Source: Zygnema circumcarinatum SAG 698-1b
Lineage: Eukaryota > Plantae > Zygnematophyceae
Direction: 5' to 3'
Length of the DNA: 64,000 nt
Assembly: GCA_037447605.1 (NCBI GenBank)
Contig: CM074815.1
Coordinates: 1,612,001-1,676,000 of the forward strand
The position numbers and the translations under genes were made by a program. The notes under the pieces are model-generated. The model did no database searches. It was not told the origin of the DNA and saw nothing but the letters and a program-made list of their open reading frames with translations. How positions within the stretch are numbered: the stretch's first letter is position 1; each line of letters begins with the position of its first letter. Shown piece by piece: positions 17,901 through 54,922 of the stretch.

Positions 17901-20900
17901 TAAACTGCTACTTGTTTGCGCATGCTGGATTGCTCAGTAATGCGCTAAAAAAGGAGTGAATCCCATGAGGGATAGCGGCATATTTTTCTATGTAAAACCG
18001 TAGATAAGAAGAGGCCTTTCAATCTATCGGATGGACGCCAGCAGGATGCTTCTGTTAATGTTTGCCACTGACAAGCAACGCGGAAAAAGAGTACAGCCAT
18101 ATCATGTCAAACACGACGATTTTTCTAAACGGTATGTCTCCTTCCATACTTCACTGCATGCCAATCTCGTGTATGTATGGAGTAGCTGATTGCAAGGACG
18201 GCAGGCCGTCCAGTTGTCCCCTACAGTGGAGTCCAAATGCTGTGTGCATCTCCGATGTAATATTATATATGGTATTGTTGAAGCACTCATAGCACAGCCC
18301 TTAACAACGTATCTTCAAAGATGCATTCCCGAACTCACCCTGCTCCCATCTGGTGGTTTCTCGCGCAGGCTCCATATGCTCCCTTGGCTGACTGTGCCTT
18401 TCTTGAGAACTCACTTCAGGAGATGTGGTAGAGGAAGGAGGAGAGGCAGAAGAGAAAGGGGCTGCTAGGGCCAAAAGGAGCTGCACAACCACCACCAATC
18501 GAGCCTTTACAAAAGTGCCAAAAAAATCGATGAACCTTTGCTTCCTGCTAGCGTGTGAGCGGGACGTCCATTTCCCTGACGGCTGTTCGACTCGATATCA
18601 GCTGTCGCATTAGAACGTCTCATTTCTTAAAAAAAAATAATAATAATAACAACTGAAACAGACTCGTAAGATTTGTGGTTATGTTTCCTTGTTAGCACTA
18701 ACAGGAAGTTACCTTGATCTCAGATATCGTTATCGCTACGTCCAAGCCCTTCATCTCCATCTGTCCCTGCCAGGCTCCCGCCCATGTCTTTGCAGCTTCC
18801 TCTGCCGTGGAATGAAAGGTTTCAAGCAGAATACAGGCTTGCAGGTCTTTGAGAAGACAATCATCTTCCTGGAACAGAGGAGACCTCTGTTGCTGTGAGC
18901 TACAGCGCCTTATCTCTGACGTTGTTCTTCCTATCCAGCTCCTGCTCCTCTGTCCGCTCTCAGTGCTCAGACCATCTTCACTGGGTTGATTATCCGATGA
19001 GGAAGACTGCCGAGCAGAAATAGCCAGTTCAGGTCGAACCGATTTGATAGATATTGGGCCGAGTGTAAAAGAAACACTCATATTAGAATTCTTTGCAAAA
19101 AGACGAGTAGCAGCATCCACTTGAAGCAGAATGCCTTCAGTCGAGCCTGCACACGTAAATAGAACCAGCAAACGTCTTCAGCTGGAAGCCTTTCGTTTCT
19201 TCAAGCTTGTAGATTTAGTCTTCCATCATCATGTTGTCTATTAGGCCATAATGGAGGGACACAATGCAGGAGCGTATTGGAAGAAAAATGAACTGAACGG
19301 GACAGCATTGGTAGTATCACAATTAACATGCAATGCAAGGTGTGATAGCAAGAAGTCAGCAATGGCACGTATGATAGAAGCGAGCATAGTCGCACCTCTT
19401 GATGGACCACACAAACCAATATGCCCAATGAGGCCTATTTCCACAACCCAATACAATATCATTTAGCAAGAAATCACCCATCATCAAGTCAGGCCAAGCT
19501 TACTTCTCTCAGGCTGGCCATTGGTCAACAGGAGACTGAAACCCTTCAGCTGCATGGACGCTGAACCCTCCCAGGCACATGCAGACTTAGCCTCTGGCAA
19601 CCGTTGCTCCGCTACCGCTGACCGTTCAGCTGAGGAACTCATATTCTCGATCGCCAAAAGACTTGAGCCACATAACTCAAGCGAAGCGAGAAGGTGCGCA
19701 AGCGCAGTTGTCTCTATTGAAAATTGACCTCCCTGCATTTCACCCAGCCGATTCCTCATGAAGAGGTTCCACTTTCCAGGAATACCAATGCACATATCTG
19801 AATAACAGTTGATGAGCGTGGGCATGAACAGAGGAAAAACTGTGACAATAAATCCCCTAGTTTTGACAATCGGTCGTACGCCTCCCAAAATCGCTTTTAC
19901 TGACATTCGATCATTAATGTAAGCAGGCCCGACATCCTATTCAATGAGCAAAGGGACCTCTCCACTTGTACTTTACCTCCATGGCGGCTGAGACATAATC
20001 GAAGTCTGGTGTGACCCCCACACAAAAAATCAAGTCGTCACCCCAACTTCTGAGGTGATCCGAAGCACTCTCTCCGGATGCAGAATCAAGCGAAACTACA
20101 ACCAACGGAGCCACTTGGAGAAAGCAGGCTGAACCCATTGGCAGCTGCTGAAGAAGATCACTGCTGCCTGACTGAGAGTCTCTAGGCTGCACGTACACAG
20201 TGTTAAATAGGATTTCCGTAGGGCAGCCTTGATTTAGGCCCCAATCTTTCGCTTGCTTCCACGACTGAAGCCGCTCCTCCAATGTGGGAAGGCTTTCGGG
20301 AGAGCTACATCCTCGTCTAAATGAAAATTGCTCTTCTGCATCGCTTTGGAGCAATCTTCGCAAACTCCAAGTGTCTTCTCTTTCATAAGCAATAGTCTCA
20401 TCAGGGTTCCCATCTTCGCACGCTATGACTTGCAGAACACATCCCGGCAACAAACACACCGCTCTTGACGATAAATTCTGCGAACCATCTGATGGAACCT
20501 CTCCAGCGGTAAAGCGAAGCAACGAAAGGCCAACCCTTACGTCAGTTGACGAGCCATCGCCCACGAGGATATCACTAGTGAAACCTTTGACCATAGCCTC
20601 AACTCGTTGTCTGTGCGTGTACTTGAAGGCAGATCCCTTCATCGCATGGCCTCCATGTTGTCGGCGAGAATCTGTACTCTTGGATCTGCTCATGCGTTGC
20701 TCTCTCTCGACTTTATTGTTTTGCAAGTTTGGAGCCTCTTCGGACGAACGAGTTTCTTGAGAAGGCATGGCTACCAACCAATTGCAGACCAGCTTGAGGG
20801 TCCCTACTCGCGCTCCCACAGCCACAGCTACTGTAGACAAGGAAGGTCCTGTTTCAGGTGAGGGCGAGAATTGTGGAACACTCGTACTTGAAGCGTTTTC

Positions 20901-23900
20901 TCGTTCGCCACTGCAGCTAGGAGCAGCTTTTTCCAAAGTTTCACTGCCAAAGGCGCTTGCTGACATCTCTTGGAATGTTGACAAAAGCTGCAGACAGGAA
21001 GCAGGTGCGGTGAAGACTGTTAACAACTTCCCTTTCCTTTGATGTCCCACCGCAAAGTCAGTCACGAAGAGAATCGCGACTGAAACTCAGCAAAAAAAAA
21101 AAAAAAAAAACAGAAATGAAGCACTTCAATAAGGATGCAAAGGAGCAGAAAGAAGTTGAAATAATGCAGAAGAGGTTGTACGACCTCCACAACACTACAG
21201 CCAAATGGATGGTATCGGGAGACCTGTGAAATTCCAGCAACAGCTTCAGGTGTCAGCTTGAGCCCCAAATAGGGCACGTCCACCACCATGGCCGCAGAGG
21301 TGCTGCTGCCTGTCCCAAACAATGAGCTCCAATAGTCCCTGCACCCACGGCTCCTTGTGTCGCTTAAAGTGCCAAATATTCTCGCAAATGACGAAGCAGG
21401 ACGACTAAAGCAGCAAAGATACACCGCCGTGGAAAGAAGACGGGGATAAACAAAATGAACAGATCAACAGGTGTCGAGCTAAAAATGAGGAGTCGCTGCA
21501 GAGACGAACATACATGTGAATAGAAGAATGAATATTGAGAGATGCTGGCTCCACCAAGGCCTCACTGTGACCGCCATGGACTAGAAGGAGGCCTGCATTG
21601 GTAACAGAGAGGGCCAGGCCCGTCCATCTCTCACGATGCTCCAAGTACAGCCCGCGAACATCGGCTCCGGGAATGGCAGGTCGGGGTGGACGCCTCTCCC
21701 ACGCTGCCCTCTTGACAGCCTCTTTCCAATTGCCTGTGTTCTGTGCAGGGCCTTCGAAATCATTTTTGAGAAAAGAAAAGGAGGGTAAACATGCAGATTC
21801 TTGTGATTGATTGTTAAGACTCGACGACAGTTTAGTTGGAGGTTGGATAGGACAAGCTGTGAGCTCCAAATCACCCAAGTTCAGCTCAAGCCTCAAACCC
21901 TCGGGCTCTCGTCGATGGTGACTAATGGGAGAGTTACTGAAGGAGCTAGTACTATGTAATGGCGAATGGAGGATAATTCGGGGTCCTTCTATGGCAAGAG
22001 AGCCTTGTAAGCTCAACAAGGGACCTATACCCAGTAGTGTCTGTCTCAGGATGCTCAGACTAATAGACTTCAAATTGTTTGCGACCTCCCTTAAGCTCAC
22101 AGCCTGTTCTTCTGCCTGTGACTGGTCGTTTTCAGGTCTGCGTTTATTTAGAAGGTGTTGACTTGAAAAATCGCTGCTACTCGCATGTTTTAATTCTTCA
22201 CCAACACCTTTAATAGCTTGTGTGCCCAGCACATATGAAAGGTCCTTAACAAGAGGTCCTAAAGTGTGAGGTAGGTCTGAAGGAAAGGAGGCATCAAGCC
22301 TTCCCATAGCAAGTGCACAAGCTAACAACCCCGACGATAGCCCTCCCGAAAGGCCATCGGCGGGGCTTCCCAGTTCTAGCAGAAGGAAGGGCCTTCCTCT
22401 TCCTCTTGCCATTTCACCATTTCCTTGCGACATATTTTCACCAAAGAGCTGTTTCCGCTGTGGTTCTTGACTCTGTCCTCCATTTTCCTCCTGTTTTGAA
22501 CTTTTCCCTGCTGATAGAAGTCGCCACGGCAGCCAGCGACGCCATACGGAACTAGAAGGCATGGCTCTTCCTTTCGGGTCTGGAAACGTCTTGAAACCTG
22601 GACGAACGAGTACAGGGGCCACGTCTGACTTCGATGTCAAAAGCAAACGGTTAGAAACAGCGTTACTTCTCAGCAATATTTCTGGGGAAGAAAGTGGACC
22701 CGACCATCTATGCCAAACATTCTCCTGTGACACAGACTCAGCGTCAGCATCTTCAAACACCTCTTCGTTCTCCGAACTGCCTTCTTCGTCATGATTTTCT
22801 TGATAATCAGGTACGTTATCGGTCTGGACAGTTGTGGTTGACTGAACGCTGGCGAATGACACATCCCCTTGAACATGTGAGCATTCAACTTCCACCAGTC
22901 TGCCTTGGTCTCCAACCTGGCATGCAAAAGAAAATCCAATCCATGAAAGGCAGACGACTGGAAGGCCACTTTTCCCTGCACTCGAAGATTCTACAGTTTT
23001 AAAATTCACGGCATTATCTGTCCGTGGAGAGGCTTTCGACAATAGAGAAGGAGCGAGCATGAAGGAGCCATGTCGACTTTGTACAGTGTACATAGAGTTT
23101 CTGTTGGTGCCCCACTGTTCCGCGGTATGAACTCCCATAAACAAGCCTGAGCGCGTGTTTCCCTCTGATCCTTCAGGACCTCTAACCTTACGTCTTGCAA
23201 TTCGCCGAGCTAAAGCCACAGCCTCCAGAGGAATCTTAGTCTCAGCTTCAGCCAGCTCTGCTTTCAAACTGCTTCCACTTCTTCGACTACTGCTTGAAGT
23301 ATTGACTCCCCGGCTTCTCCATGTAGAAGCCTGTGTCGTCCCCCAGTGTTGCATTCGCAACCAGTCCTCATATAACACCGCATAGTGGTGTCGGGCCGTC
23401 CCTGCCTTCAGGGCATGTTCCAAGCGCTGCCGGGAGCTCCTTCGTAAAATAAGAGCGGTTGCTTTACGCCAAAGCTTTCCTGCTTTTGTGAATGTCAGAG
23501 CATTTGACCCCCCGTCTTTGAATAACGAATTTGCAATGGCATCAACGTCTGCGTCTTTCGCGCACTCATTGCTGAGTGGTGCATACGGATGGGCCTCCTC
23601 TACTACATCACCAGAGCTACAAGAGCAGTTTGGTGGCCCAGGACCTTGCATCGCAGACGCGACGGCAAGGAGTGGGCTGATGTCAGCCGTTTCCAGCTCT
23701 ACGCATACGCCCATGATGTCTGCCTCCAACCCCTGAAGACCACCGTGCCGTAGCTGCAACTGTAGTCTGAGGTCACTAGGAAGCAGCAAATGACGCCGCT
23801 GACCCCCACTGCTGTTCAAAGTCTGATTTTCTACATTTTGCTGGTCATTCAAATCACTCATTCCCTCCTTTTCTTGAAGACTTTCCATGCTAGTATGACT

Positions 23901-26287
23901 TCTGTGGCTATTTGTAGAAGCCTCACCTTCTGTCTCAAGCCAGGTGTAAAGCCCAACAATGTTGCAAAGCATGTCTATACACTTTACTTGGTTATCAGTA
24001 GGAGAATTACTAAGAACGCCAACAGTTCTAGAAAGACCGCTTTGCTGGTTAGCTGAACTAAACCACCCTCGCTTGAGGCTTACGCTAGTGACCCCGGCAC
24101 AGACGTCAACGCGAAGATAGCCTGCTGAGTGAGCCAGAAGGTGCACAGTTGCATTGCGAATTTCCACTTGCAAAAGTGCAAGAATTGCATCAGTAATGCG
24201 TGTTGTGGCAGCATCACCTATGCGCGCCGCCATGCTAGCATTTGTCTTTTCCTCCATGGCCTCCACGGCAGTGTGAACAGCTGCTCCCTGTCTATCCCAC
24301 CACATGTAAGCTCCAGAAGCTAGCGAGGAACATGCATGCCAGCGTCAGGAAAGCCTATCGGCAAAAGGTTATTGAACGGAGGCTCATGAAGACTTCAGAG
24401 GTTCAGACCAGTACCAAGCCATTTGAAAGAAAACAAATCACTGGACAAACTGGTCCAAAGGGGCCGAGTATAAAGTTGCGTCTCAGATATTTCCTTATAA
24501 AAACAAAGGATAGCCATCAAGTCCAGACGCAAATTCACTCGAAAATAACTTGCTCAACGCAATGAGAATAATGCTGTGGCCACAAGGTTAGCCACATGAG
24601 CAATCTATAATCGGCTTACAAGGTGGGACCCAGGCCAAGGGGGGCGGAATGAGTACAGATTGCGTTAGCAGTGGCATACAACTTTCGACCATATCGTGAT
24701 TTGTGCATCTGTAATCTTTTCTATCTTAATTCTGTTCAAAAAAAGAAAACTGGCTCTTCTAGATCGGAATCGACATTTGCACTGTTTCATGAAGGGCACC
24801 GTCGTGTCCTATAGGATCCATTAACCTGTTTTTTCTGTTGCTGTCTATTGAGAAATTTTAAATGGTTCGTCCCCTTCCATGTTTTTTAGACAAGAACCGC
24901 TGTAGGATTTGCTTCACAAATCTCCTCCCTGATATGACCACGCTCTCTCAAAGTCAACGTGGCTGTCAACAAAACTTTAATGACCACCGACCAAGAAATC
25001 TGTGCAAGACAGCTCCAGAACTGTCCGATACTAATGAGCCTCACAGCAACAGATTTTTGAAATGTTAACTTTATCGCTGAATGATTGATCTTGGTACGAC
25101 TGGTCGGATACCCCGTCTAGACTCAAGCGCAGAATATGGGCCAAATCATCGTCGCACAGCGGACGACCTGTGACTTCGACAATTCCAGCTGTTTTTTTCG
25201 GGAGGTGCTTCACCAGTGTAATGCAGGCTTCCATTCATGTAACTGAAGTCACACGCGAATGAAAGTGGCACTATGAAAATAATCTTGTTCATTTAAAAAG
25301 ATTTTGAGACGACACTCGCATGGTTGGCATTGTTCCTCACCTCTGGATCAAGTGCCGTTAGGCGGCCACTACGAAGCTTCTCTTCAGACTTGCTGGCTTG
25401 TTCTGTCCACCAAGGAGAATCTTGTGCCCTGTAATTGTCATAGCACCGGATTGTAAGTCAGACATCTACCTGCAAACAAATGAGAAGAACGTTGTATTTT
25501 TCCCAAGAACTAAAGCAAGAGCTTCTCGTTCACAATGTCACTCTCGGAGAATGCTTCACAGCGGTCACCGGCCAGATATTCAAGTAACTTTCCGCGGAAT
25601 CATATGAGTGCCTGAAGGCTCTGTACATGAACATGTATACAATGGATATCTTCACATGAACGTTGTTGCAGCTCGAGAACTACGCTGCCAAGAATGGGGC
25701 TTCGAGGCGCTATTGAAGGCTGCTTAAATAGGCCATCATCAGAAAGGTGAAGCTTCGATTGAATAACAAGAATACGGATAACAAGCTCTTGCTGAAACTT
25801 TAGAGGCCGGGCTGTCTCCCGAATGATGTTTCACAGTTCTCTTTTAACTTCAATAATGACATTCCTTGCCACATGCAATGCAAGAAAACCGGCAAGTAAC
25901 TCTTGGTGTGAAATGTAGCCGCGTTTCTTGATTGCGAGGGCCATTAACATGACGTATTCACTTCAACTTGAAAACGAGTTGAAGGCAAGACAGGATACCA
26001 AAGAAGAATCACCTTGGCTCGAGGAACAGGTGAAGGTTTTCAAGTTGCAAATTAATTGCGTCCACTAGCAGAGGCTTCAGCTGCAGTACAAGCCCGCCTA
26101 TACTGCCCCTCTTCAAAATCACAGGCAGGGAGACCAAGTAGCTGTTTATCGATTCCACTCGAATATCTACGTCTGACAACTCCACTCTTCCCTGCAGCAA
26201 GCTCACTCTCAGCGCGTTCAGATTCACGACAAGAAACGTTGACAGTTGGTGCGCCAGCGCCTCGGACAGCCACCGGTCGAGCACCAT
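5981..26287 (-). CDS. VPS13X: VPS13X-type vacuolar protein sorting 13 (bridge-like lipid transfer protein), multi-exon. First exon ~26012-26287, last exon 5981-6331
   Basis: Chorein-like N-terminus (MVLDRWLSEALAHQLSTFLVVNLNALRVSLLQGRVELSDVDIR). VAB-repeat motifs (PLLVLRNDSGLPLEL, LPTLRVRNLLPF, HRFLIENRTPHSI). C-terminal blocks typical of plant VPS13X: IYFERFEIHPIKVSLS, MRAVYVARGSKLLPPSFISLFDD, YVEGYLQAMVDALFKQDYLRVKV, QVVLKNLPPN, FLDGRLCRQIPNPFVRRVVSGFLLSF. Many internal exon borders were not resolved individually. Confidence 0.93.
16552..17313 (-). CDS. VPS13X: VPS13X exon(s) with a beta-trefoil-like motif upstream of the VAB region
   Basis: 253-aa ORF containing SLHGRSPTGEALRL and YQLVNEKSGRYLNFVDGIP, as in plant VPS13X. 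Confidence 0.7.
   Translation of the reverse strand: MQVDYPKGEKTSSRFNLLSLHGRSPTGEALRLQFEPRSGQVQVSAAKKGACDLWQLQLHKALGDAGEAEYLSEDGDLSLYDCKHGPRYQLVNEKSGRYLNFVDGIPILTKQPIHALKVHILAAPFPSTAGQNSQGLLKHPSGSRTLSRGGPAGNAPSLHQQIDGVEEGEGEGESMGMEQVARAVANVPAVRLLMNKARIIVLYDAASGLHMLPILQVCLEGVEGVAHVGPSKARLLLDCSLAMDYYDASKNQW
21516..24300 (-). CDS. VPS13X: Largest VPS13X exon (~2.8 kb; borders approximate)
   Basis: Lies in the 966-aa ORF 21405-24305; VPS13 N-region helix (KLWRKATALILRR...HYAVLYEDWL); probable donor ccacat|gtatgt near 21515. Confidence 0.75.
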
Positions 26288-28057: not shown

Positions 28058-28200
28058 AACCAACCAACCAACCAACCAACCAACCAACCAACCAACCAAC
28101 CAACCAACCAACCAACCAACCAACCAACCAACCAACCAACCAACCAACCAACCAACCAACCAACCAACCAACCAACCAGCCAGCCAGCCAGCCAACCAAC
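28058..28200. repeat. (AACC)n microsatellite with an (AGCC)n end
   Basis: Direct reading; this tract produces the WLVG/NQPT repeat ORFs. Confidence 0.97.
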
Positions 28201-28450
28201 TGATAAATTGCTAGCCATTCAATTGATGTGGTATGAACCATGGGACCATGACATTGGAACGAACCAACCAACCAGCCAACCTACCAACCATGGGTCGCAA
28301 CAAACCTATCTTCGCAACCATTGGCAACGGTCGACCACTGGTTCCCCTCCCTCCCTCCCTCCCTCCCTCCCTCAGGGAGAAAGAGAGTTTCCAGGCCGCG
28401 GTGTAGAAAAAATGGAATAATCATGACTATCTATCTAAAATCTTAAAACA

Positions 28451-28478
28451 AATAATAATAATAATAATAATAATAATA
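28451..28478. repeat. (AAT)n microsatellite
   Basis: Direct reading. Confidence 0.9.
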
Positions 28479-28489
28479 AGTAAATAACA

Positions 28490-29405
28490 ATAAAGAGGAA
28501 ATTGGCATTGAACTCACGATGGCGAGGCCATCAAATGTACATGAACAAAAGCAGCAGCATTGGGGAACTACGAGGGACAGGTCGCGAAGGACCCAAGCAC
28601 AAAAGAAAAAAGCTAGGAGCAAAAAACTATGCCTAGGCACAACAACGCTTCAATCCCTCCCTCGAAGCAGCCGCGAAGGTCATTGAAGAACAACTCGTGC
28701 AGAGCCCCCCCTCACCCTCACTCTGTACGTGCCCAAGTGGGCCCTCAAAGAAAAGACCCCTTCGGATCGCCGAGTTCTCTCACTCCCTTCCTCCTCTCCT
28801 CCCTACAGCTCTCTACCCATTCCGCTCCTTGCCAAAGTTTTTTGCTAAAAACTGCGGAGGAATGTCGGCCACCTGGAGCCCCATTGCCGGCCGCTCGCGT
28901 GCTCAGGATCTCCCTTAGTCTCTGCACAAAGAGAGTGAGAGCGAGAGAGAAAGAGATATATAGAGTTGGAGAAAGTGAGAGAGCGGTGGGAGAAGGGAGT
29001 AGGGGAGAGAGAAGAGCTCGCGGGAGGGGAAAGAAGAAGGGAGGCAAAAAACGGAAAGGAGTAGGAAAGGAGAGAAGTGGCACGGAGACAATCTAGAGAC
29101 AAAATGAAAGCGTGAGACTCGGTCTACTACACAGTTCAAGGAAAAAAAACTGGGAATGGGAAGAACAAGGGAGAGCAACAGCAAGGTTGTCTTCGAAAAG
29201 AATCTCGATTATGAGAGTGCGAACAAAGGCTACGATGGCACAATTTGACAGAGTATCATGATAAACTGCCACTGAACGCCATGGCCCAAAAATGAGCTAA
29301 TCACATTGACTTTCCAGTTCTATCAATAAAAATAGCTTTGAATAATCAGTCATTAGTAGAAGGTCGCCCACCTGTACAAAAGCTGCTACGCTTCAAGAGT
29401 CGATC
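28490..29405. repeat. Copy 1 of a ~0.9-kb duplicated unit (3' flank of the LRR-lipase gene)
   Basis: Collinear similarity to 34915-35966 (direct) and 37108-37907 (inverted), e.g. gtacgtgcccaagtgg, gctcaggatctcc, gacaaaatgaaagcgtg, gtcattagta. Confidence 0.9.
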
Positions 29406-31646
29406 TTAATTTGGAAGCAATTGTTCCAAGATAAAGGCAATTCCATGAAGACTTCGTACATATTCAGAAACCTTCCCGAGATCATCAGACAAATGACCCT
29501 CTTTATGTTTCACCCTCTTAGAGATCATTGGTCTATGCCCATGCATTTGGCGGAGCGCAAAAGCCGGAATCGTGTGCGCATCGGAAACTACCTCCATGAG
29601 ATTTTGACGAGGGCGAGGTGATGTGGTCGGTCGACAATACCTGAGTACAAATTTACACAACTGCTCCAAGACTTGGACTTTGGACTTGGGATGTGCCTCT
29701 AAGGAGCTTAAAGGCTTATCCACAAGATCCCCCGTGTACAGAACGGTCCCTGGAGGTTGCAGCCTTCCTGCGAAGTGCACAATATCCCACTCGTGACGAA
29801 CCATGCAGATGTTCCCCTTCATCAGGTTTACATCTACTCCGCCAAAACACATAATTTTTTGAATGGTGTCTTCATCCACGCCAGGTGAGTTGAAGGTGAC
29901 CAGTCTGACATTGTTTTGCCGATGGAGCGGCTCCTCAATGCTCGCAAAGGTGTGCATTGCCAAAGCGCCCCCGAGGCTGTGGCCCGTTATCACCAACTTG
30001 ATCCCGTCACTGGCATCACGTCGTAGAGCGTTCTCCATCCATTCTTGTAAGTCCTCGTGTACGCTTTCGAACACTTCCTTCCCAACTGCATGTCGATTCA
30101 TGTCCTCTTTGACGCCTGTCGGAGCAAACTCCGCTTCAGGTTTGGCTCCATGAAACACAATAATGACGGCTTTCTGACCTGCTTGCTCGCCTTGTGGAAC
30201 CAGTTGGAAGGCAACACATCCTTCCGGGTGGCGAATGGAGTCATTTATTCTGTACTTCTTTGCATAGCAGCTCACAGATTCACAATGGATGTTTTCTCTT
30301 ACATTAAATTCGATGTCACTGTCATAAGTGCTGAATTTCTCATCCAAATACACCAACCAACAGGCCAGCATCTGCAGCGCAGCTTCCTCCATTGTCAACA
30401 TTTTGGAAATTTGTTTGTTGTAGTAGTCAATGACGGGGCCCCCAGCGTTGCTCACAAGCGCCTCTTCCGCTTCTTCCCAAAGTTCTTCAAATTCACGGTG
30501 TGTTTTTGAAGTGAAGTAAATCAAGTCTGCCTGGTCTTCAAATGACAGATCTTTCGGACAATAAAACAACGAAGTAGCATCAAAATTGAACCCCCTTGAA
30601 AATAAAGAATCCCTTCCACCTGGAAGAGTCGTAGGCAGACGGAGATTTTTCACTCTCGGCAAAGTGAGCAGCGGGTTCTCGCACACATCAAGCACTGTCA
30701 GTTTCCCTAGAGATGCAATTTCGGCTGGGATCGAGGTCAGCTCATTTCCCATGAGGAGTAATTCTTTCAGTTGACGAAGTTGGCCAATTTCCGCCGGCAA
30801 AGAGCTCAAGCGGTTGTAGTTCAGCCATAGCACTTCCAATTTTCCTAGAGATGAAATTTCGGCCGGGATCGAGGTCAGCTCATTTCCGTTGAGGACCAAT
30901 ATTTCAAGTTGACGAAGTTGACCAATTTCCGCCGGCAGAGAGCTCAAGCGGTTATTGTCCAGCCATAGAGTCTGAAGGTGCTTCAATTCGCATATGCTCT
31001 TCGGCAAACACGACATCTGATTGGACCCCAAATTCAGCTCTGATAGCGCACTCCACCGAAGAATGGGCGCTGGAAATTCTCGAAGCTGATTGCTGCTCGC
31101 CCTGAAGATAGTGAGATTACTCAGCATCTCTTGATCCATAATTTTTTCTATCTTGTTGTCGGTAAGGTCCAGCGTCTGGAGATGCGGCATCTCAATTCTG
31201 GGAACAACCTTGAAATTGTTGCCATGTGCATAAAGAATCCTTAAGGATGACCAATTCTCCAATGGTGGCAAGATTCCCAAATGGCAGCCGTTGAGATCAA
31301 GCTTGTACATTCTGTCACTCGACCGGTTGAAATAAACAAGCAGAGACTTCATATAGGCTCTCCTCAAGCTGACAGATCCTGCGGAATCGGAGGCTTGGTC
31401 CTCTGCCATCTTTAAAAGCAAACCCACCAGTTTTACTGCCGCGAATTCGACAGTCGCCCCCTCCTCAGGACGGCAGTGATCCGTCTCCTTCTTCCACCAT
31501 TTCCGCAGCTCTGAGAATAGTGCGATTTCTTCTTCTGAGAATTGGTCTCTGAATGTTTCCCGAAGAGAGGACCACTGGGCCTCCAACGATTGCAACCATT
31601 GCTCGTATTGAGTATCGCGCGCTTGGCCGCCCTCCTCTCCCTCCAT
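29406..31646 (-). CDS. Intronless 746-aa LRR + class-3 lipase (alpha/beta hydrolase) fusion protein
   Basis: Uninterrupted ORF: helical N-terminus (~115 aa), ~10 LRRs (LxxLxLxxNxLxxLPxEIxxL, e.g. LWLDNNRLSSLPAEIGQL), then lipase motifs IIVFHG, ITGHSLGGALA (nucleophile Ser), TFNSPGV, HEWDIV (Asp) and DAHT (His). Confidence 0.92.
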   Translation of the reverse strand: MEGEEGGQARDTQYEQWLQSLEAQWSSLRETFRDQFSEEEIALFSELRKWWKKETDHCRPEEGATVEFAAVKLVGLLLKMAEDQASDSAGSVSLRRAYMKSLLVYFNRSSDRMYKLDLNGCHLGILPPLENWSSLRILYAHGNNFKVVPRIEMPHLQTLDLTDNKIEKIMDQEMLSNLTIFRASSNQLREFPAPILRWSALSELNLGSNQMSCLPKSICELKHLQTLWLDNNRLSSLPAEIGQLRQLEILVLNGNELTSIPAEISSLGKLEVLWLNYNRLSSLPAEIGQLRQLKELLLMGNELTSIPAEIASLGKLTVLDVCENPLLTLPRVKNLRLPTTLPGGRDSLFSRGFNFDATSLFYCPKDLSFEDQADLIYFTSKTHREFEELWEEAEEALVSNAGGPVIDYYNKQISKMLTMEEAALQMLACWLVYLDEKFSTYDSDIEFNVRENIHCESVSCYAKKYRINDSIRHPEGCVAFQLVPQGEQAGQKAVIIVFHGAKPEAEFAPTGVKEDMNRHAVGKEVFESVHEDLQEWMENALRRDASDGIKLVITGHSLGGALAMHTFASIEEPLHRQNNVRLVTFNSPGVDEDTIQKIMCFGGVDVNLMKGNICMVRHEWDIVHFAGRLQPPGTVLYTGDLVDKPLSSLEAHPKSKVQVLEQLCKFVLRYCRPTTSPRPRQNLMEVVSDAHTIPAFALRQMHGHRPMISKRVKHKEGHLSDDLGKVSEYVRSLHGIAFILEQLLPN

Positions 31647-31671
31647 GTTGGTACGAACGGACGGACAGGCA

Positions 31672-31707
<36 letters not shown>

Positions 31708-31740
31708 GAGAGAGGGGGAGAGAGAGAGAGAAAAAGAGAG
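31672..31740. repeat. (GA)n tract just upstream of the LRR-lipase ATG (TC-rich on the coding strand)
   Basis: Direct reading. Confidence 0.85.
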
Positions 31741-32044
31741 TAGTTGGGGAACTATGAGCCGGCCTCGCTGAGCGCACTACGTCACTTCCCGGCAAGCCGC
31801 GTTCCGCCGCCAACAGATCTGTCTGTCTCAGGTCTCTCTCAGGGTTGGACGGATGGCTTGGCTCTGTCAGAATACCTTGTCTTGTCTCAGAGACAGGTAG
31901 GTAGGTAGGTAGGTTCGTATCCTCCTCTACCACTCATACATCGTCCTCTGGTTGAAAAGCCTCGTCTATTTGCGTAACCTCCTCTATTGCTGCTGCTCAC
32001 GAACCTAGAGGTGGATACAATCGCAGACGTGGATTCAGAGGCAG

Positions 32045-32104
32045 AGGTGGAAGTTTTCCAGGTTGAAGTTTTCCAGGTGGAAGTTTTCCAGGTGGAAGCT
32101 TTCC
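32045..32104. repeat. 4 x 15-bp tandem repeat aggtggaagttttcc
   Basis: Units start at 32045, 32060, 32075 and 32090 with single substitutions. Confidence 0.95.
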
Positions 32105-33879
32105 CAGTTCAGCAAATTTGACGTTCAGCAGAGCAACCGTGAGGCTCCGTCGCGCTGCAAAAGCAATGAGGCTGAGGTGCTTTTAGGCTTACGTCATTCT
32201 TCTGTGCTCGACGCGGCGACCCCCTCCATGGCTGCCCGCGCCTGCCTCCTCGACTCGGCGGAACCTCTCAGAGTCGGAGTCCAGGCGCCATGGCTCTGGT
32301 CCAGCAGCTCAAAACGTCCCCCACAGTCCTCCAACCAAAAGAGGTAACCGTCCCGTCCACGCTTTCCCGCTGTCCGCCGCGTGGCGCAACAGCAAAGGCG
32401 CCAAATCCAAACGTGGATTAAGGGTAAACTTAAGGGTAAACGGTGAAAACTCAGAAATGTAGCCGGGAAAGTGTTGACAATTTGAGCCTGGTCCCTCCCA
32501 CTACTCTCACTCTCTGACATGCTTGCAATGTCTGAATCAATACAACCCTCAAGTGCACACACTGAAAAGAAAATGATCCAATCAAGCAGACACCGAAAGA
32601 GAATAAGTTGAACTCTCAGGTTAATTAACTCCTAATCAACACCTACTTAAATACTAAGCGCTGCACTACTCCACGTTCTACTGCACGCCGCCGCGCGCCA
32701 CCGCGCTCCACCGCACAGCGCACCTCCATGTCGCTGGTGATGCTCCACGTCTCCAGGAGCTCGCCTCGCACCGCGCTGGAACTCACCCTCATGGTCGCCA
32801 TGGCCAGGAGGGAGAAGGTCCGTACAGTTTCCTCCTTCCAAAGGCGCACCGACCTTCTCGAAGCTTCGCATCCACGCGCGCGCTTCTCCAGCGCCTGTGT
32901 TGGTCGTCCGTACATCCATGCGTCTCGTAAGCTCCGGACATTTCGTACGGTCGTCCACTAAAGCAATAAGCAATACAAAGCTGACACGCAGCCTATCGCT
33001 GCGCGCCACGTGTCCAAACTATACTTATCAATTCTAAGTAGACTCCTGTGGTGGCGCGGCCTATCGCCGCCCTCCACGTGTCCTACTCAGACTTCTCGTG
33101 TTCCCACTAAGAACAGCGCCCTAGCGCCCTGTTCAGACTGTGACCAAATCTCCTAAGGACCGCCGACAAAAGGCTAAGGACCGTACAGCGTACAATTCTA
33201 GGCTATACCCTTATTGTACCCAACAGAAAGCACCGTCCGCCGACAAGCTATACTCATCCCCCGGAGGGATACTTGTCGCCCCTCCCCTCCGTGGTCCTGC
33301 TGCTCCTCCCTCGCAGAAAGTAATCCTGCACTTGCAATACCTGTTTGTTGCTGCTGCTGCTAAGAAATCGTCCGTTTGTCTGCTGGTATTTCCGAACTTC
33401 ATTCCCCAATGTCTTAATGTTTCTGATGTCTCTGCGTTCCTGCATTTCTGATGTTTAAAAATCTACTGCATCTGCGAGGCTTGCAAAATCTGTCTTAGTT
33501 TCTGCAGTTTTTGGTCCTCTTGATTTTTTTGCAGTCTCTGCTAGTTTTCTGTTTCCGTTTGTTTCTGTACAACCTGCAAGTAAGAAAATATATTTCAGTC
33601 AGAAAAGTGATGATGAGGAGCATGAACAGGACGAAATACTCATAAAGCCCAGTCTTTTGAGTCTTTCGAGCATGAATTTATTCTGATTTTCTTATAGTTT
33701 ACAAAGTTGACGAGGTTTACTAAGTCGAAGGGGGAGTTTGGAGAAACGAGGACTTGAACGTTTCTTTGGTTTTTTTTTGCTTATTTCTGTGGACTGTGCA
33801 ATTGCAGATATGCTGAGGTCAGCCCTAATGGCGAGTATACTCGGAAGGGCCAGGCCAAGCTGGCTTATGGCGCTATGGT

Positions 33880-34385: not shown

Positions 34386-34914
34386 TCACGTCCTCCCTCT
34401 CGTGCAGGTGCTTAACTTGTAGGTTAAACTGAACTTAAGGTTGTAGGTTTAGGGGGGATGCATATGTACAGGAGTTTTTTTTCTTTTATTTTTCCTTACT
34501 TTTTGGACGGTTTTTGAGGGTTCAGAAATTGATGGGCTCTTGAGGTTTTGGAAGCATCGAGTTTTCTTCACATGTACAGCAAATTGGAATGTGTTGAATG
34601 CTGCATTGCATTCATCGCCCATTTCCTTTTTTTCCTTCTCCTCTTTTTTTGTCAGTACTGTGCCATTGTGCCAACTGGTCTGTGCCTGCTGAAGAAACAA
34701 TGTATTATTTACAATCACAATGTACTATTGACAATCTCCCTCCGTTTGCCCCTCCAAGGCGATTTTTTTCTGTTCTGCTAAGTAAGCCGCTTTCACTCCC
34801 ACTCTCTCTACAAGCTGAAAATATTCACAAAAAAAGTAAATGGAAAAAAAAAGAAAAAACTGGAAAAATCATCAATATCCTAAATTTAAAAAAAAAAATT
34901 AAAGAAAAATAAAA

Positions 34915-35966
34915 TAAAGAGGAAAATGGCATTGAACTCACGATAGCGAGGCCATCAAATGCACATGGACAAAAGCAGCAGCATGGGGAACCACGAGGGA
35001 CAGGTCGCAAAGGAGCCAAGCACAACAGAAAAAAGCTAGAACGGAAAACTATGCCTAAGAACAACAACGCTTCAATCCCTCCCTCGAAGCAGCCGCGAAG
35101 GTCAACGAAGAACTCCTCCTCGTGCACAGCCCCCCTCACCCAACTCCCCCTCGTGCACAGGCCCCCCTCACCCTCACTCTGTACGTGCCCAAGTGGGCCC
35201 TCAAAGGGAAGACCCCTTTGCATCGCCGAGCTCTCTCACTCCCTCCCTCCTCTCCTCCCTACAGTTCACCACCCATTCCGCTCACTGCCAAAGATTTTTG
35301 CTAAAAATTGCGTAGGAATGTCAACCACTTGGCCCCATTGTCGCCCGCGTGCTCAGGATCTCCCTTAGTCTTTGCACAATGAGAGTGAGAGCGAGAGAGA
35401 GAGAGATGTAGAGTTGAAGAAAGTGAGAGAGGGATAGGAGAAAGGAGTGAGGGAGAGAGAGAAGAGCTCGAGGGAGGGGAAGGAAGAGGGGAGTCAAGAG
35501 AAGGAAAGGAGTAGGAAAGGTAGAAATGACACGGAGACTCTCCAAAGACAAAATGAAAGCGTGGGACTTGGTCTACTATGCAATTTAGGGAAAGAGGGCT
35601 GCAAACGCTCATGGTGGGAAGGAAGAGGAAGCGTGAGCCATGGGTTCGCGTTTGAAAGAGAGGGAACATGTAAAAGTTGGGGATGGAGAGGGAAGGGGAA
35701 AGGAGTGTGTGAGGCGGGAAGGAGGAAGGGAAAAACAAGGAGAGCAATAGCAAAGTTGTCTTTGAAAGAGAATCTCAATTATGAGAGTGCAAACAGAGGT
35801 TACAATGGCACAATTCGATAGAGTATCATGCCTTTGAACGCCATGGCTCAAAAATGAGCTAATCACATTGACTTTCTAGTTCTATCAATAATAACAACTT
35901 AGGTTAATTAGTCATTAGTAAAAGTAGCTCACTTGTACAAAAGTTGCCACGCTTCAAGAGTCGATC
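34915..35966. repeat. Copy 2 of the duplicated unit (direct relative to copy 1); 35080-35928 is the left arm of an inverted repeat
   Basis: Aligns to 28490-29405, with an extra ~130-bp segment that it shares with copy 3. Confidence 0.9.
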
Positions 35967-36985
35967 TTAATTCGGAAACAATCGTTCTAAGTGAACCAAT
36001 TTCATGAAGAAATCATACATATTTGGAAAATCTTCCGAGATCAACGGGGAAATGACCCTCGTTGTGTTCTACCCTCTTTGTGTTCCACCTTCTTAAAGAC
36101 CACTTGTCTATGCCCATGGATGTGGCGGAGCGTAAAAGTCAAAATTGAGTAGATATTTACACAATTGCTCCAAGACTAGGACTTTGGACTTAGCAAGTGC
36201 CTCTAAGGAGCTCAAAGGCTTATCCACAAGATCCCTATGTATCAAACAATGATTGGAGGTTGTAGCTTTCCTACGTAGTGCACACTATCCCACTCGTGAT
36301 GAATCATACAAATGTTTTTCAACAGCAAAGTTACATCTACTCCACTACAATACATTTTGTTTTGAATAGTGTCTTCATTGATGCCAAGAGCGTTGAAGAT
36401 GACCGGTTTGACATTTTTTTGCCGATAGAGTGGCTCCTTATTGCTGCTAAATGCGTGCGTTGCCAAAGCAGCCCCAAGGCTGTGGCCCGATATCACCAAC
36501 TTGATGCCATCACCAACATCAAGTCTTAGAGCATTCTCCATCCATTTTTATAATTTTTTTGTACGCTTTTGAACACTTTCAACCCAACTACATGTCGATT
36601 TATGTTCGCCTTGATGCCTGTCAAAGCAAACTCTGCTTTGGGCTTGGTTTTATGAAACAAAATAATGTCAGCTTTCTAACCTGCTTGCTCGCCTTGTGGA
36701 ACCAAATGGATAGCAAATGTTTTCTATTACATTATTTTTGATGTCGTTGTTGTAAGTATTGAATTTTTTATCCAGATACACTACTGAACAGGCCAATATT
36801 TGCAACGCAACTTCCTCCATTGTCAAAATTTTGGAATTTTTTTTGTTGTAGTAGTCGATGACACAACCCCCAACGCTGCTTGCATGCCCCTTTTCTGCTT
36901 CTTCAAACGATTCTTTGAATTTACGATGTGTTTTTGAAGTAAAGTAACTCAAGTTTACCTTGCCTTCAAATGATAGGTCACCACG
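35967..36985 (-). pseudogene. Truncated, decayed copy of the lipase half of the LRR-lipase gene
   Basis: Collinear with 29406-30560. Retains GHSLGAALA and HEWDSV but has stops/frameshifts and two internal deletions, one removing the DAHT catalytic-His segment. No LRR or N-terminal sequence. Confidence 0.92.
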
Positions 36986-37107: not shown

Positions 37108-37907
37108 CCTACCTTCTACTAATGACTAATTAACCGAAGCTACTATTATTGATAGAACTAGAAAATCAATACGATTAACCCATTTTCCAGCCATGGCGTT
37201 CAAAGGCATGATGCTCTATCAAATTGTGTCATCGTAACCTTTGTTCGCACTCTCATAATTGAGATTGTCTTTCGAAGACAACCTTATTATCGCTCTCCTT
37301 TGTACTTCCCCTCCCCCTTCCTTGCCTCACCCACTCCCTACCTCTTCCCTCTCCATCCCCAAACTTTTACACGTTCCCTCTCTTTCAAACGCTAACCCAT
37401 GGCTTACGCTTCCTCTTCTTTCCTACCCTAAGCGTTTGCAACCCTCTTTCCCTAAACTGCATAGTAGACCAAGTCTCACGCTTTCATTTTGTCTTTGGAG
37501 AATCTCCGTGCCATTTCTCCCTTTCCTACTCCTTTCCTTCTCTTGCCTCCCCTCTTCCTTCCCCTCCCTCGAGCTCTCCTCTCTCCCCCACTCCTTTCTC
37601 CCACCCCTCTCTCACTTTCTCCAACTCTATCTCTCTCTCTCTCTCTCTCTTGCTCTGGAGATCCTGAGCAGGCGAGCGACAATGGGGCCAAGTGGCCGAC
37701 ATTCTTTCACGATTTTTAGCAGAAAACTTTGGCAGTGAGCGGAATGGGTGGTGAGCTGTAGGGAAGAGAGGAGGGAGGGAGTGAGAGAGCTCGGCGATGC
37801 GAAGAGGTCTTCCCTTTGAGGGCCCCCACTTGGGCACGTACAGAGTGAAGGTGAAAGGGGTTGTGCACGAGGAGTTCTTCGTTGACCTTCGGGACTGCTT
37901 CGAGGGA
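37108..37907. repeat. Copy 3 of the duplicated unit, inverted (right arm of the inverted repeat)
   Basis: Its reverse complement aligns to 35080-35928 along the whole length, including the segment absent from copy 1. Confidence 0.9.
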
Positions 37908-53625: not shown

Positions 53626-54922
53626 ATGTCACGTCCCCTCCCGGCCCTCCCTCGGGCTCCGGCCCTGGCCATGGCGGCGCTGCTCCTCCTCCTCCCCCTC
53701 GGCGCACAGGCCGCGGTCCTGGGCGGGTGCAACGTGTGCTCCATCGTGGTGTGCCCACCCTCCTCGAGCTGCGCTGTGGCGCCGCCCTGCTCGCCGCTCT
53801 GCCTCTGCGCGCCCGGCTACCGCGCCGTGGGGGGCCGCTGCGTGGGAGGGGGAGGGCCGTCGCCGGTTCCCGTAGGGGCCGGTAAAGGTGAGTGCAATGG
53901 CTCCGGATTCTGAGGAAATATGACATACGGGGTGTGAGCCACGCATAGCAATGGTTCCATCAGCCGTATGCATCCATGCATGCATGCGATGATGATGCAG
54001 CAGCTGACGCATGGCCTGTGCTGAGTGCAGGTTCAGGGGGCGTCTCCGCCTCCGCCTGCCTTCCGCTGCACAACTCTGCACGCGCCGCCGTGAAGGTCCC
54101 CCCTCTCAAATGGAGCACTGCAGGTCTCTGCTCCCCCCCTCCCCCCCCCCCCCCNNNNNNNNNNCCCCCCCCCCCCCCCCCCCCCCCGCCACAGGCCCTC
54201 ACAAAACATCATCCCTTGACAACAAAAAACGGAAAACAAAACTTTTATGTGAATTTCTATCGATTTTTTTCCTTTCCTGAAACTAATCCAAACCCACTGG
54301 TCCTGTGCAAACGCCGTGAACTGCGGGAGGGTGTGTGTGTGTGTGCAGCTGCCTCTAATGCGCAGGCGTGGGCGAGCCAGCTGGCGGCGGGGGGGCGCTG
54401 CCTGAGCCTCGTCCATGGCGGCCTCGCGGGCATGGGCCAGAACCTGTACGGCAGCTCGGGGCCCTCCACGTGCGCGGTCGCCGTCAAAGCGTGGACGGAC
54501 GAGGCCGCGCTCTACTCGTACTCGCTCTTCGACGCGCCCGGAGGCTCCGGCTGCAGCACGGGGCGATGGGAGGACTGCGGGCACTACACGCAGGTGGGGA
54601 GGGAGGGTGGGAGGAAGGGAGGGAGGGAGCGAACTAGAAAGCAGGAATACAACAGATATTTTTCAAATGCGGCACTCTCTTGGGGAGTAAGGCTAGCTTT
54701 TACGCTTACATTGCTAAAGGTTACCTTTGGGTTTGGCTCTTTATATGTACGTTGTATCTTTGTATGTTGACTCTCCGATTTTTGGATGTGGGATACTCTC
54801 AGGTGGTGTGGCGGGCAACGACAGCTGTCGGCTGTGGGATGGCTACGTGTGCAGGTGGCGGGAGTGTGTGGGCTTGCGACTACACGCCGGCGGGAAACGT
54901 GGTGGGAGAGTATCCGTACTAG
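53626..54922 (+). CDS. Secreted CAP/SCP (PR-1-like) protein with an N-terminal Cys-rich EGF-like module. Exons 53626-53887, 54031-54123, 54349-54593, 54803-54922
   Basis: Signal peptide (MAALLLLLPLGAQA), Cys module CNVCSIVVCPPSSSC...CLCAPGYRAVGGRC, CAP motifs HNSARAAV.VPPLKWS, GQNLY, GHYTQ|VVWRATTAVGCG and CDYTPAGNVVGEYPY*. Intron 2 contains a poly-C tract and an N gap. Confidence 0.9.

Follow-up and report, generated by a model that had tools for sequence, protein, structure and literature searches.

A transcribed gene of the alga Zygnema circumcarinatum joins a SHOC2-type leucine-rich repeat arc to a class-3 lipase of probable bacterial origin

Introduction

Intracellular leucine-rich repeats (LRRs) that are attached to, or regulate, a catalytic domain are known from Cyr1, PHLPP and LRRK2, and the EDS1, PAD4 and SAG101 proteins of plants, which share the class-3 lipase fold, act as small-molecule receptors and not as lipases. 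In bryophytes, an alpha/beta-hydrolase domain and LRRs occur together in cytosolic nucleotide-binding LRR receptors (NLRs), the Hyd-NLRs, and the hydrolase domains of two Marchantia Hyd-NLRs elicit cell death resembling the hypersensitive response in Nicotiana benthamiana (PMC11218826). In bacteria, the lipase effector (Tle) of the type VI secretion system (T6SS) of Enterobacter cloacae is a phospholipase with both A1 and A2 activity (PLA1, PLA2), which is kept inactive by an ankyrin-repeat immunity protein, Tli, that sequesters its amphipathic lid helix (PMC11470151). Here we describe a gene of the streptophyte alga Zygnema circumcarinatum SAG 698-1b whose product carries LRRs and a class-3 lipase domain in one polypeptide. 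The gene lies within a stretch of 64,000 nucleotides (assembly GCA_037447605.1, contig CM074815.1, positions 1,612,001 to 1,676,000 of the forward strand), which is referred to below as the window and supplies the coordinates used throughout. We rate the product as a modular protein of the LRR-enzyme kind whose lipase is probably a domesticated bacterial one, a combination for which no named precedent was found.

Results

A nuclear gene with spliced untranslated regions and an uninterrupted coding sequence

The coding sequence is an uninterrupted open reading frame (ORF) of 746 codons plus a stop codon, present in the ORF list of the 64-kb window at 29406-31646 on the minus strand, to which all features of the gene given below also belong. 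It is intronless, constitutes the longest ORF of the spliced transcript, and is covered by RNA contigs that tile 29372-31646 without joints. The start codon is the ATG at 31646, in the context ACCAACATGG, with in-frame stops upstream of it in the spliced transcript, and the GC content of the coding sequence, 48%, equals that of the window. The single 746-residue ORF that a sequence-only reading of the window had placed here is thereby confirmed, and the transcript that this reading presupposed exists.

Five public sequencing runs bearing the species label contain 98-99% of the gene's sampled words, and three of these five were mapped as contigs on 28200-33500. The contigs of all three runs contain two joints, which read CT..AC on the plus strand, that is, GT..AG for a minus-strand gene. 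One joint removes an intron of 450 nucleotides from the 3' untranslated region (UTR) (28922-29371, GT..AG), which begins 34 nucleotides past the stop codon and whose spliced form exceeds the unspliced one about tenfold in contig depth; contig pieces joined to 29372 define the last exon, which extends at least over 28525-28921. The other removes a 5'UTR intron of 188 nucleotides (32003-32190, GT..AG), located between the 5'UTR exon next to the ATG (31647-32002), of which the contigs at 31745-32002 are joined over the intron, and an upstream 5'UTR exon traced by contig pieces over at least 32191-32608. The exon next to the ATG includes a (CT)n simple repeat, 31647-31744, immediately upstream of the start codon, at which the reads break. 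Because contigs tile the coding sequence and carry the joints of two UTR introns, the LRR-lipase gene belongs to the nuclear genome and is both transcribed and spliced, with introns found only outside the coding sequence. The spliced UTR joints rule out that it is a bacterial contaminant of the assembly; it follows from the same joints that the runs are not genomic DNA.

The 5' end of the transcript is not fixed, since over 32604-33225 the RNA contigs match the assembly only with 8-14 mismatches and 3 indels, including extra letters at about 32604-32608; the contig sequence in this segment stems from another allele, from a paralogue, or from a repeat attached to the 5'UTR. An upstream ORF of 108 codons lies in the upstream 5'UTR exon (32191-32562). 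Just past the 3'UTR, at 28377-28553, contig word depth reaches about 3,670 in run X1 as against 200-670 for the gene, and many loose contig ends occur at both sides; this segment is probably a dispersed repeat present in many transcripts.

Domain architecture of the predicted protein

Pfam searches identified LRRs (LRR_4, LRR_8 and LRR_1 matches with E values from 9e-24 to 3e-15; LRR_4 9e-24, LRR_8 1e-18) and a Lipase_3 domain at residues 519-623 (40.9 bits against a cut-off of 22; E 2.4e-10). The Pfam scan of the protein yielded no family match to a P-loop NTPase, NB-ARC or NACHT domain at E values up to 0.1, none to the EP domain, and none to Roc, COR, kinase, cyclase or phosphatase domains. 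The protein opens with a region of about 110 residues (residues 1-110; 31317-31646) with four predicted helices (predicted local distance difference test score, pLDDT, 50-74), an orphan for which searches with the N-terminal 112 residues gave no Pfam, Atlas or fold match. The ten LRRs follow at residues 113-338 (30633-31310) and are separated from the lipase half by a predicted disordered linker, residues 339-368 (30543-30632; pLDDT 25-45 in the full-length model), which has no homology among the relatives of the LRR half or of the lipase half. Residues 369-440 form a helical N-terminal extension of the lipase that is shared with the bacterial lipase family described below, and the lipase half as a whole, comprising these helices, the class-3 lipase domain and a C-terminal tail, spans residues 369-746 (29409-30542) according to Pfam, alignment and model. 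The best 19-residue Kyte-Doolittle mean, 1.42, is below transmembrane strength and the N-terminus is acidic; hence neither a signal peptide nor a membrane helix is predicted.

On the combined evidence of profiles, models and alignments, this is predicted to be a cytosolic modular protein in which an LRR arc of the SHOC2/ROCO type, a flexible linker and a class-3 lipase with a catalytic triad succeed one another. Most of the architecture given by the sequence-only reading is borne out: about ten LRRs (ten were found), a class-3 lipase domain (above the Pfam threshold and with matching folds), the absence of a signal peptide and transmembrane helix, to judge by hydrophobicity, and of a nucleotide-binding domain, to judge by Pfam, and, taken together, a cytosolic LRR protein with a full-triad lipase and without an NB-ARC. 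That reading had the LRRs joined directly to the lipase, which does not hold, given the linker of about 30 residues and the helical extension that lie between them.

The LRR half and the divergence of its concave face

The ten repeats, each of 22-23 residues, share the register LxxLxLxxNxLxxLPxxIxxLxx and were modeled with pLDDT above 90. Pfam, motif register and model all place them in the SHOC2/Ras-group/ROCO class, with repeats of about 23 residues, a curved solenoid and no signal peptide, as expected of Ras-group/SHOC2-like LRRs. Among solved structures, the best Foldseek matches were SHOC2 (E 1e-11, 29-33% identity), Leptospira LRR proteins, Rsu1, the LRR of LRRC8 and the Chlorobium Roco LRR. 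At the sequence level, the repeats share 40-46% identity with the LRRs at the N-terminus of cyanobacterial ROCO proteins and with LRR proteins of Neochlamydia; in the ESM Atlas, the clusters closest to the whole protein consist of SHOC2-like LRR proteins of chlorophytes, at a weak score. These scores do not fix where the LRR half comes from, because the repeat consensus inflates LRR similarity.

In part of the arc a unit of two LRRs is duplicated in tandem, the copies being residues 224-269 and 270-315 (138 nucleotides each, together 30702-30977; self-match 86%). They differ at 23 of the 138 nucleotides, so that the duplication is not very recent. The differences are distributed unevenly: eight of the nine amino-acid changes fall at the ten x positions of the concave face (positions 2, 3, 5, 7 and 8), and all seven purely synonymous changes are in framework codons, a concentration of replacements on the concave face with a Fisher p of 1.5e-6. 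This pattern suggests that the concave face is free, or driven, to change while the framework is conserved, that is, a diversification of the putative ligand face, short of proof of positive selection.

The lipase fold and the active site

Folded alone with 54 relatives, the lipase domain gave a predicted template modeling score (pTM) of 0.81; its core is modeled confidently as far as residue 669, and the tail beyond is ill defined. Foldseek assigned a probability of 1.0 to matches with FaeA, the Rhizomucor and Thermomyces lipases, T6SS Tle, PLA1 and EDS1, with TM scores of only 0.3-0.48, whereas lipase clusters of AFDB and the Atlas reached 0.5-0.6; the structural neighbors in the ESM Atlas are all bacterial, belonging to Tle-like phospholipase or Mbeg1/DUF2974 clusters. 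When the family profile was compared with solved structures, the matches included a fungal mono/diacylglycerol lipase (E 4.5e-11), the E. cloacae T6SS lipase effector (E 6e-9), EDS1 (E 1e-6) and Arabidopsis PLA1 (E 5e-4), the last two being the plant lipases, which match weakly. The model thus has the class-3 lipase fold with its alpha/beta-hydrolase core, and the domain joins the class by the Pfam gathering threshold, by fold and by its Ser-Asp-His triad.

In an alignment of 55 family members, the predicted nucleophile Ser557 (GHSLG; codon 29976-29978, checked) is Ser in 55 of 55, and Asp621 (HEWD; 29784-29786), which is Asp in 53 of 55, aligns with the catalytic Asp of the Thermomyces lipase in the profile alignment. 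The proposed catalytic His is His652 (LEAHP; 29691-29693), found in all 15 of the close relatives aligned there and in 43 of the 55 members of the wider set. Judged by these conserved columns the triad Ser557-Asp621-His652 is complete. The sequence-only reading had named the same Ser and Asp, but its third residue, the His of DAHT (His691; 29574-29576), has to be rejected: it sits, with pLDDT below 50, in an insertion that is a gap in 16 of 17 and in 52 of 55 relatives. The alga's lipase carries about 40 inserted residues in its C-terminal part relative to the bacterial proteins.

The oxyanion-hole motif departs from the family. Residues 498-501 (30144-30155) read F-H-G-A where the family consensus is F-R-G-T; Thr occupies the last column in 51 of 55 members and Ala501 is found only in the alga (1 of 55), so that the Ser/Thr typical of this position in class-3 lipases (F-R-G-S/T) is lacking. 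Backbone amides are the main support of the oxyanion in lipases of this class, and Ala is therefore compatible with activity. Since the backbone amide is kept at FHGA, it is plausible that the lipase is catalytically active, perhaps at a reduced level.

Bacterial relatives of the lipase half

When residues 380-746 were used as the query of an exhaustive HMMER search through 1.84 billion protein representatives, only 78 relatives emerged at E values up to 1e-3, the best of them at E 4e-25 and 39% identity. The nearest relatives, which include a set of metagenomic bacterial proteins (P0121-P0139), are single-domain lipases of about 340-400 residues, collinear with residues 400-746 of the alga's protein and 23-33% identical to it in a multiple alignment (28-43% among one another). 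They share with it a TEEAALQ helix, the F-x-G-T region, GHSLGG, an RH..D motif, the conserved His and a C-terminal LLP; the insertion of about 40 residues and FHGA are the alga's alone. P0121-P0139 overlap Pfam Lipase_3 and in some cases also PF26363 ('Phospholipase-like/Tle-like'), stand alone without LRRs, and none is characterized. LRRs were not found in any of the 78 relatives, as judged from hit lengths and from Pfam, with which 20 of the 78 were scanned. The lipase region also served as the seed of a search among 5.8e9 proteins that was restricted to comparable lengths and returned no match; a profile search of a word-indexed database gave few matches and no informative names, and a homology search with the entire protein was dominated by LRR proteins and told nothing about the fusion. 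The libraries that were searched contain no proteins of this genome, and the protein is not on record in public assemblies.

Several observations place this family in bacteria. All six of the nearest relatives checked on their contigs lie in dense gene arrangements of prokaryotic type, in which some genes overlap and neighbors have housekeeping functions (ABC transporters, RecG, GreA and homoserine dehydrogenase among them). One of the six, P0122, lies 3 kb from T6SS membrane-complex genes (DotU/IcmF-related) and is the only one of them near T6SS genes; more distant relatives carry eCIS_core, PLD or TPR fusions. A scan of GTDB genomes detected distant relatives only, 24-41% identical over the best segments (Myxococcota, Pseudomonas, Parachlamydia and others), and singled out no donor lineage. 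In a maximum-likelihood tree of 55 domains, the alga's lipase is placed within the clade to which all six relatives checked on their contigs belong, with a similar branch length. Given a sparse and divergent bacterial family whose wider relatives look like cargo domains, the lipase half is most likely an ancient acquisition from a bacterium that was subsequently fused to LRRs.

Some features of the bacterial loci may be recorded here. Serine/threonine protein kinase genes occur within a few kb of three of the relatives (L001 3482-9086, L034 1010-6212 and L035 286-6743), as do several ORFs without families; a comparison of synteny around the relatives found the kinases of the three loci not to be homologous to one another at E 1e-4. 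Two loci only have in common a small ORF directly upstream of the lipase (L005 43-519 and L034 4416-4976; 40% identity over 70 residues), whose product may be a partner, for instance a chaperone or an immunity protein.

A decayed duplicate and the rest of the window

About 5 kb upstream of the gene, 34907-36979 on the minus strand is a decayed duplicate, equivalent to 28482-30551, of the 3' flank, the 3'UTR and the lipase half (44% identity in tblastn, 79-84% in blastn). It is without LRRs, has lost the FHGA region, and contains at least six in-frame stops and one frameshift. Because it includes the 3'UTR intron region and the flank, a retrocopy origin was rejected. Inverted copies of the flank follow the duplicate at 37111-37907; their arms, up to 293 nucleotides long with 79-92% complementarity, could form a long hairpin if transcribed. 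Words of the duplicate region are present at a share of 0.28-0.51 in several RNA-type runs.

Elsewhere in the window, a minisatellite at 28058-28178 encodes GWLV repeats in two frames, two long ORFs on the minus strand have no Pfam match (21405-24305, 966 codons; 19941-21065, 374 codons), and an ORF on the plus strand, 53976-54770, encodes a CAP/cysteine-rich secretory protein domain (Pfam E 2.7e-6).

Discussion

Comparison with described systems

The defining domains of NLRs, Hyd-NLRs, ROCO proteins and the EDS1 family are all absent from the Pfam scan, and the protein is accordingly none of these. The layout typical of NLRs and STAND proteins, with a central NTPase and a C-terminal LRR combined with an N-terminal executioner, is found in neither respect, residues 339-455 being made up of the linker and of helices of the lipase family. 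Hyd-NLRs resemble the alga's protein in combining an alpha/beta-hydrolase with LRRs in a cytosolic protein of the green lineage, but they have a central NB-ARC, with the hydrolase at the N-terminus and the LRRs at the C-terminus, whereas the alga's protein lacks the NTPase and has the reverse order; they are likened here by architecture and not by homology. EDS1, PAD4 and SAG101 have the same lipase fold, and EDS1 and PAD4 are among the fold and profile matches, yet these proteins have a C-terminal EP domain and no LRR, and their profile match (E 1e-6 or worse) is far weaker than that of the bacterial family, with whose tail the alga's C-terminal tail aligns. The LRRs are of the same class, by sequence and fold, as those of SHOC2 and the Ras group, ROCO/LRRK, Cyr1 and PHLPP; of these, the LRR-enzyme fusions ROCO/LRRK, Cyr1 and PHLPP have other catalytic partners, the alga's partner being a lipase.

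The likeness to the E. cloacae Tle (PDB 7ubz/9cys) is at the level of the domain, in the class-3 lipase fold recovered by both profile and Foldseek. The differences are considerable: the repeat partner of Tle is a separate ankyrin protein, as opposed to LRRs in cis; its triad is Ser-Glu-His, as opposed to Ser-Asp-His; and Tle is an antibacterial toxin that is secreted, in a delivery context of the VgrG type, and that needs a glycation crosslink for activity. The delivery partners and immunity gene in a bacterium that characterize T6SS Tle effectors do not apply to a spliced eukaryotic nuclear gene. Literature searches returned no paper that names an LRR-lipase or describes this layout, and no sizeable cluster in the ESM Atlas combines LRRs with Lipase_3; together with the lack of LRRs in the scanned relatives, this agrees with the sequence-only reading, which did not recognize the architecture as a named plant family.

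Function and competing explanations

The explanation that we favor on balance, with modest confidence, is that the gene encodes an expressed, cytosolic, LRR-regulated class-3 (phospho)lipase whose catalytic half is of bacterial derivation and which plausibly functions in defense or conflict. With respect to the substrate, the enzyme would hydrolyze membrane lipids in the manner of a phospholipase A, considering that the fold neighbors are Tle-like phospholipases and that the E. cloacae relative has PLA1/PLA2 activity. The LRR in cis would serve as the regulatory or sensor module and would keep the lipase inactive or wrongly positioned as long as no protein ligand occupies the concave face; sequestration of the lid helix, comparable to the action of the ankyrin Tli on Tle, which is a precedent for the control of this fold by repeats, could be the means. 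Activation would lead to damaged membranes or to a lipid signal, plausibly in the context of defense or conflict. A sensor-gated lipase is a plausible interpretation, and the effector-type ancestry of the lipase, the divergence of the concave face and the turnover of copies suggest an immune or conflict role, for which the Hyd-NLR hydrolase domains that cause death resembling the hypersensitive response suggest a precedent.

Several results count against this explanation. Three RNA runs from another study with the same species label (X6-X8) contain zero of the gene's words; next to the 98-99% in five other runs, this suggests that expression is conditional or that the strains differ. The full-length model has a pTM of only 0.52, with pLDDT below 50 in the linker, so that the placement of the LRRs relative to the lipase is not predicted, and the loop that bears His652 was modeled with moderate confidence only (pLDDT 70-79). 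The replacements Arg499 to His and Thr501 to Ala, which are unique among the 55 family members, could weaken or abolish catalysis. In the tree, the alga's domain groups with four sequences at weak support (80/56), and no eukaryotic lipase outgroup was included; the failure to find paralogues or orthologues in the searched libraries means little, since the proteins of this genome are absent from them. Finally, searches with PADLOC and NCBIfam gave no meaningful match, and hence no known bacterial defense family.

The last of these results also fits the principal competing explanation, a possible one to which we nevertheless give clearly less credence, namely that the protein is a scaffolded lipase of lipid metabolism or signaling whose LRR is a constitutive docking module for a small GTPase, a membrane or a complex, without any immune function. 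The LRR belongs to the intracellular Ras-group/SHOC2 class, whose solved members are scaffolds, and SHOC2, Rsu1, CCR4 and the Ras-binding LRR of the adenylate cyclase Cyr1 are precedents for docking; moreover, expression is seen in all five runs that contain the gene's words, whose records show no sign of challenge. What tells against docking is that the lipase clade is bacterial and effector-like, unlike the plant lipases of lipid metabolism, and that the divergent concave face and the decayed neighboring copy suggest a turnover that would be unusual for a housekeeping scaffold. The altered oxyanion residues lend some weight to another alternative, that the lipase-like fold has been kept for binding in a pseudo-enzyme or adaptor, as in EDS1 and PAD4, both of which appear among the fold and profile matches. 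We regard this as improbable: Ser, Asp, His, the GHSLGG elbow and the other family-invariant residues are kept at 30-39% identity to the bacterial relatives, the backbone amides that can hold the oxyanion make Ala compatible with activity, and no EP domain was matched.

Two further explanations concern the origin of the gene rather than its function. Transfer of the whole LRR-lipase ready-made from a bacterium, as an LRR-bearing effector, could account for the intronless coding sequence and for the best LRR matches, at 40-46% identity, being cyanobacterial ROCO and Neochlamydia proteins. It is nonetheless very unlikely, because no LRR-bearing protein was encountered among the 78 relatives by any of the three approaches (hit lengths, Pfam scans of 20, and the length-matched search), because those LRR scores are inflated by the repeat consensus, and because the nearest whole-protein Atlas clusters are from chlorophytes. 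An artefact, whether bacterial contamination or a chance or mis-joined ORF, might be surmised from the same intronless coding sequence and from the bacterial best matches of both halves, but its probability is negligible in the face of two UTR introns spliced in the orientation of the gene, RNA contigs that tile the coding sequence, microsatellite-rich flanks of eukaryotic character, a duplicate that contains the UTR intron region, and a GC content matching the window. The most far-reaching version of the LRR-regulated lipase explanation, that the gene represents a class of innate immune receptors of streptophyte algae without NB-ARC, in which a fast-evolving SHOC2-type LRR directly gates a toxin-derived phospholipase, which a bound ligand would set free to make membranes permeable or to produce a lipid alarm signal, as a one-polypeptide sensor and executioner independent of NLRs and EDS1, seems to us doubtful.

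Implications

The present analysis goes beyond the sequence-only reading chiefly in the bacterial affinity of the lipase half and in the Thr to Ala change of the oxyanion motif. On a modest reading, the gene belongs to an expressed, probably horizontally derived lipase family without any characterized member. If the LRR gates the lipase, the protein would be a receptor-effector of very simple design in the plant lineage and, if the favored explanation is true, a clear example of how a toxin-type domain from bacteria was domesticated when it was fused to a recognition module of eukaryotes. Such a case would bear on how intracellular immunity was assembled before and alongside NLRs and on the recurrence of lipase-like folds in plant immunity, as in the EDS1 family and the Hyd-NLRs. 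The alga's protein thus offers a directly testable candidate for a minimal sensor-effector in the sister lineages of land plants.

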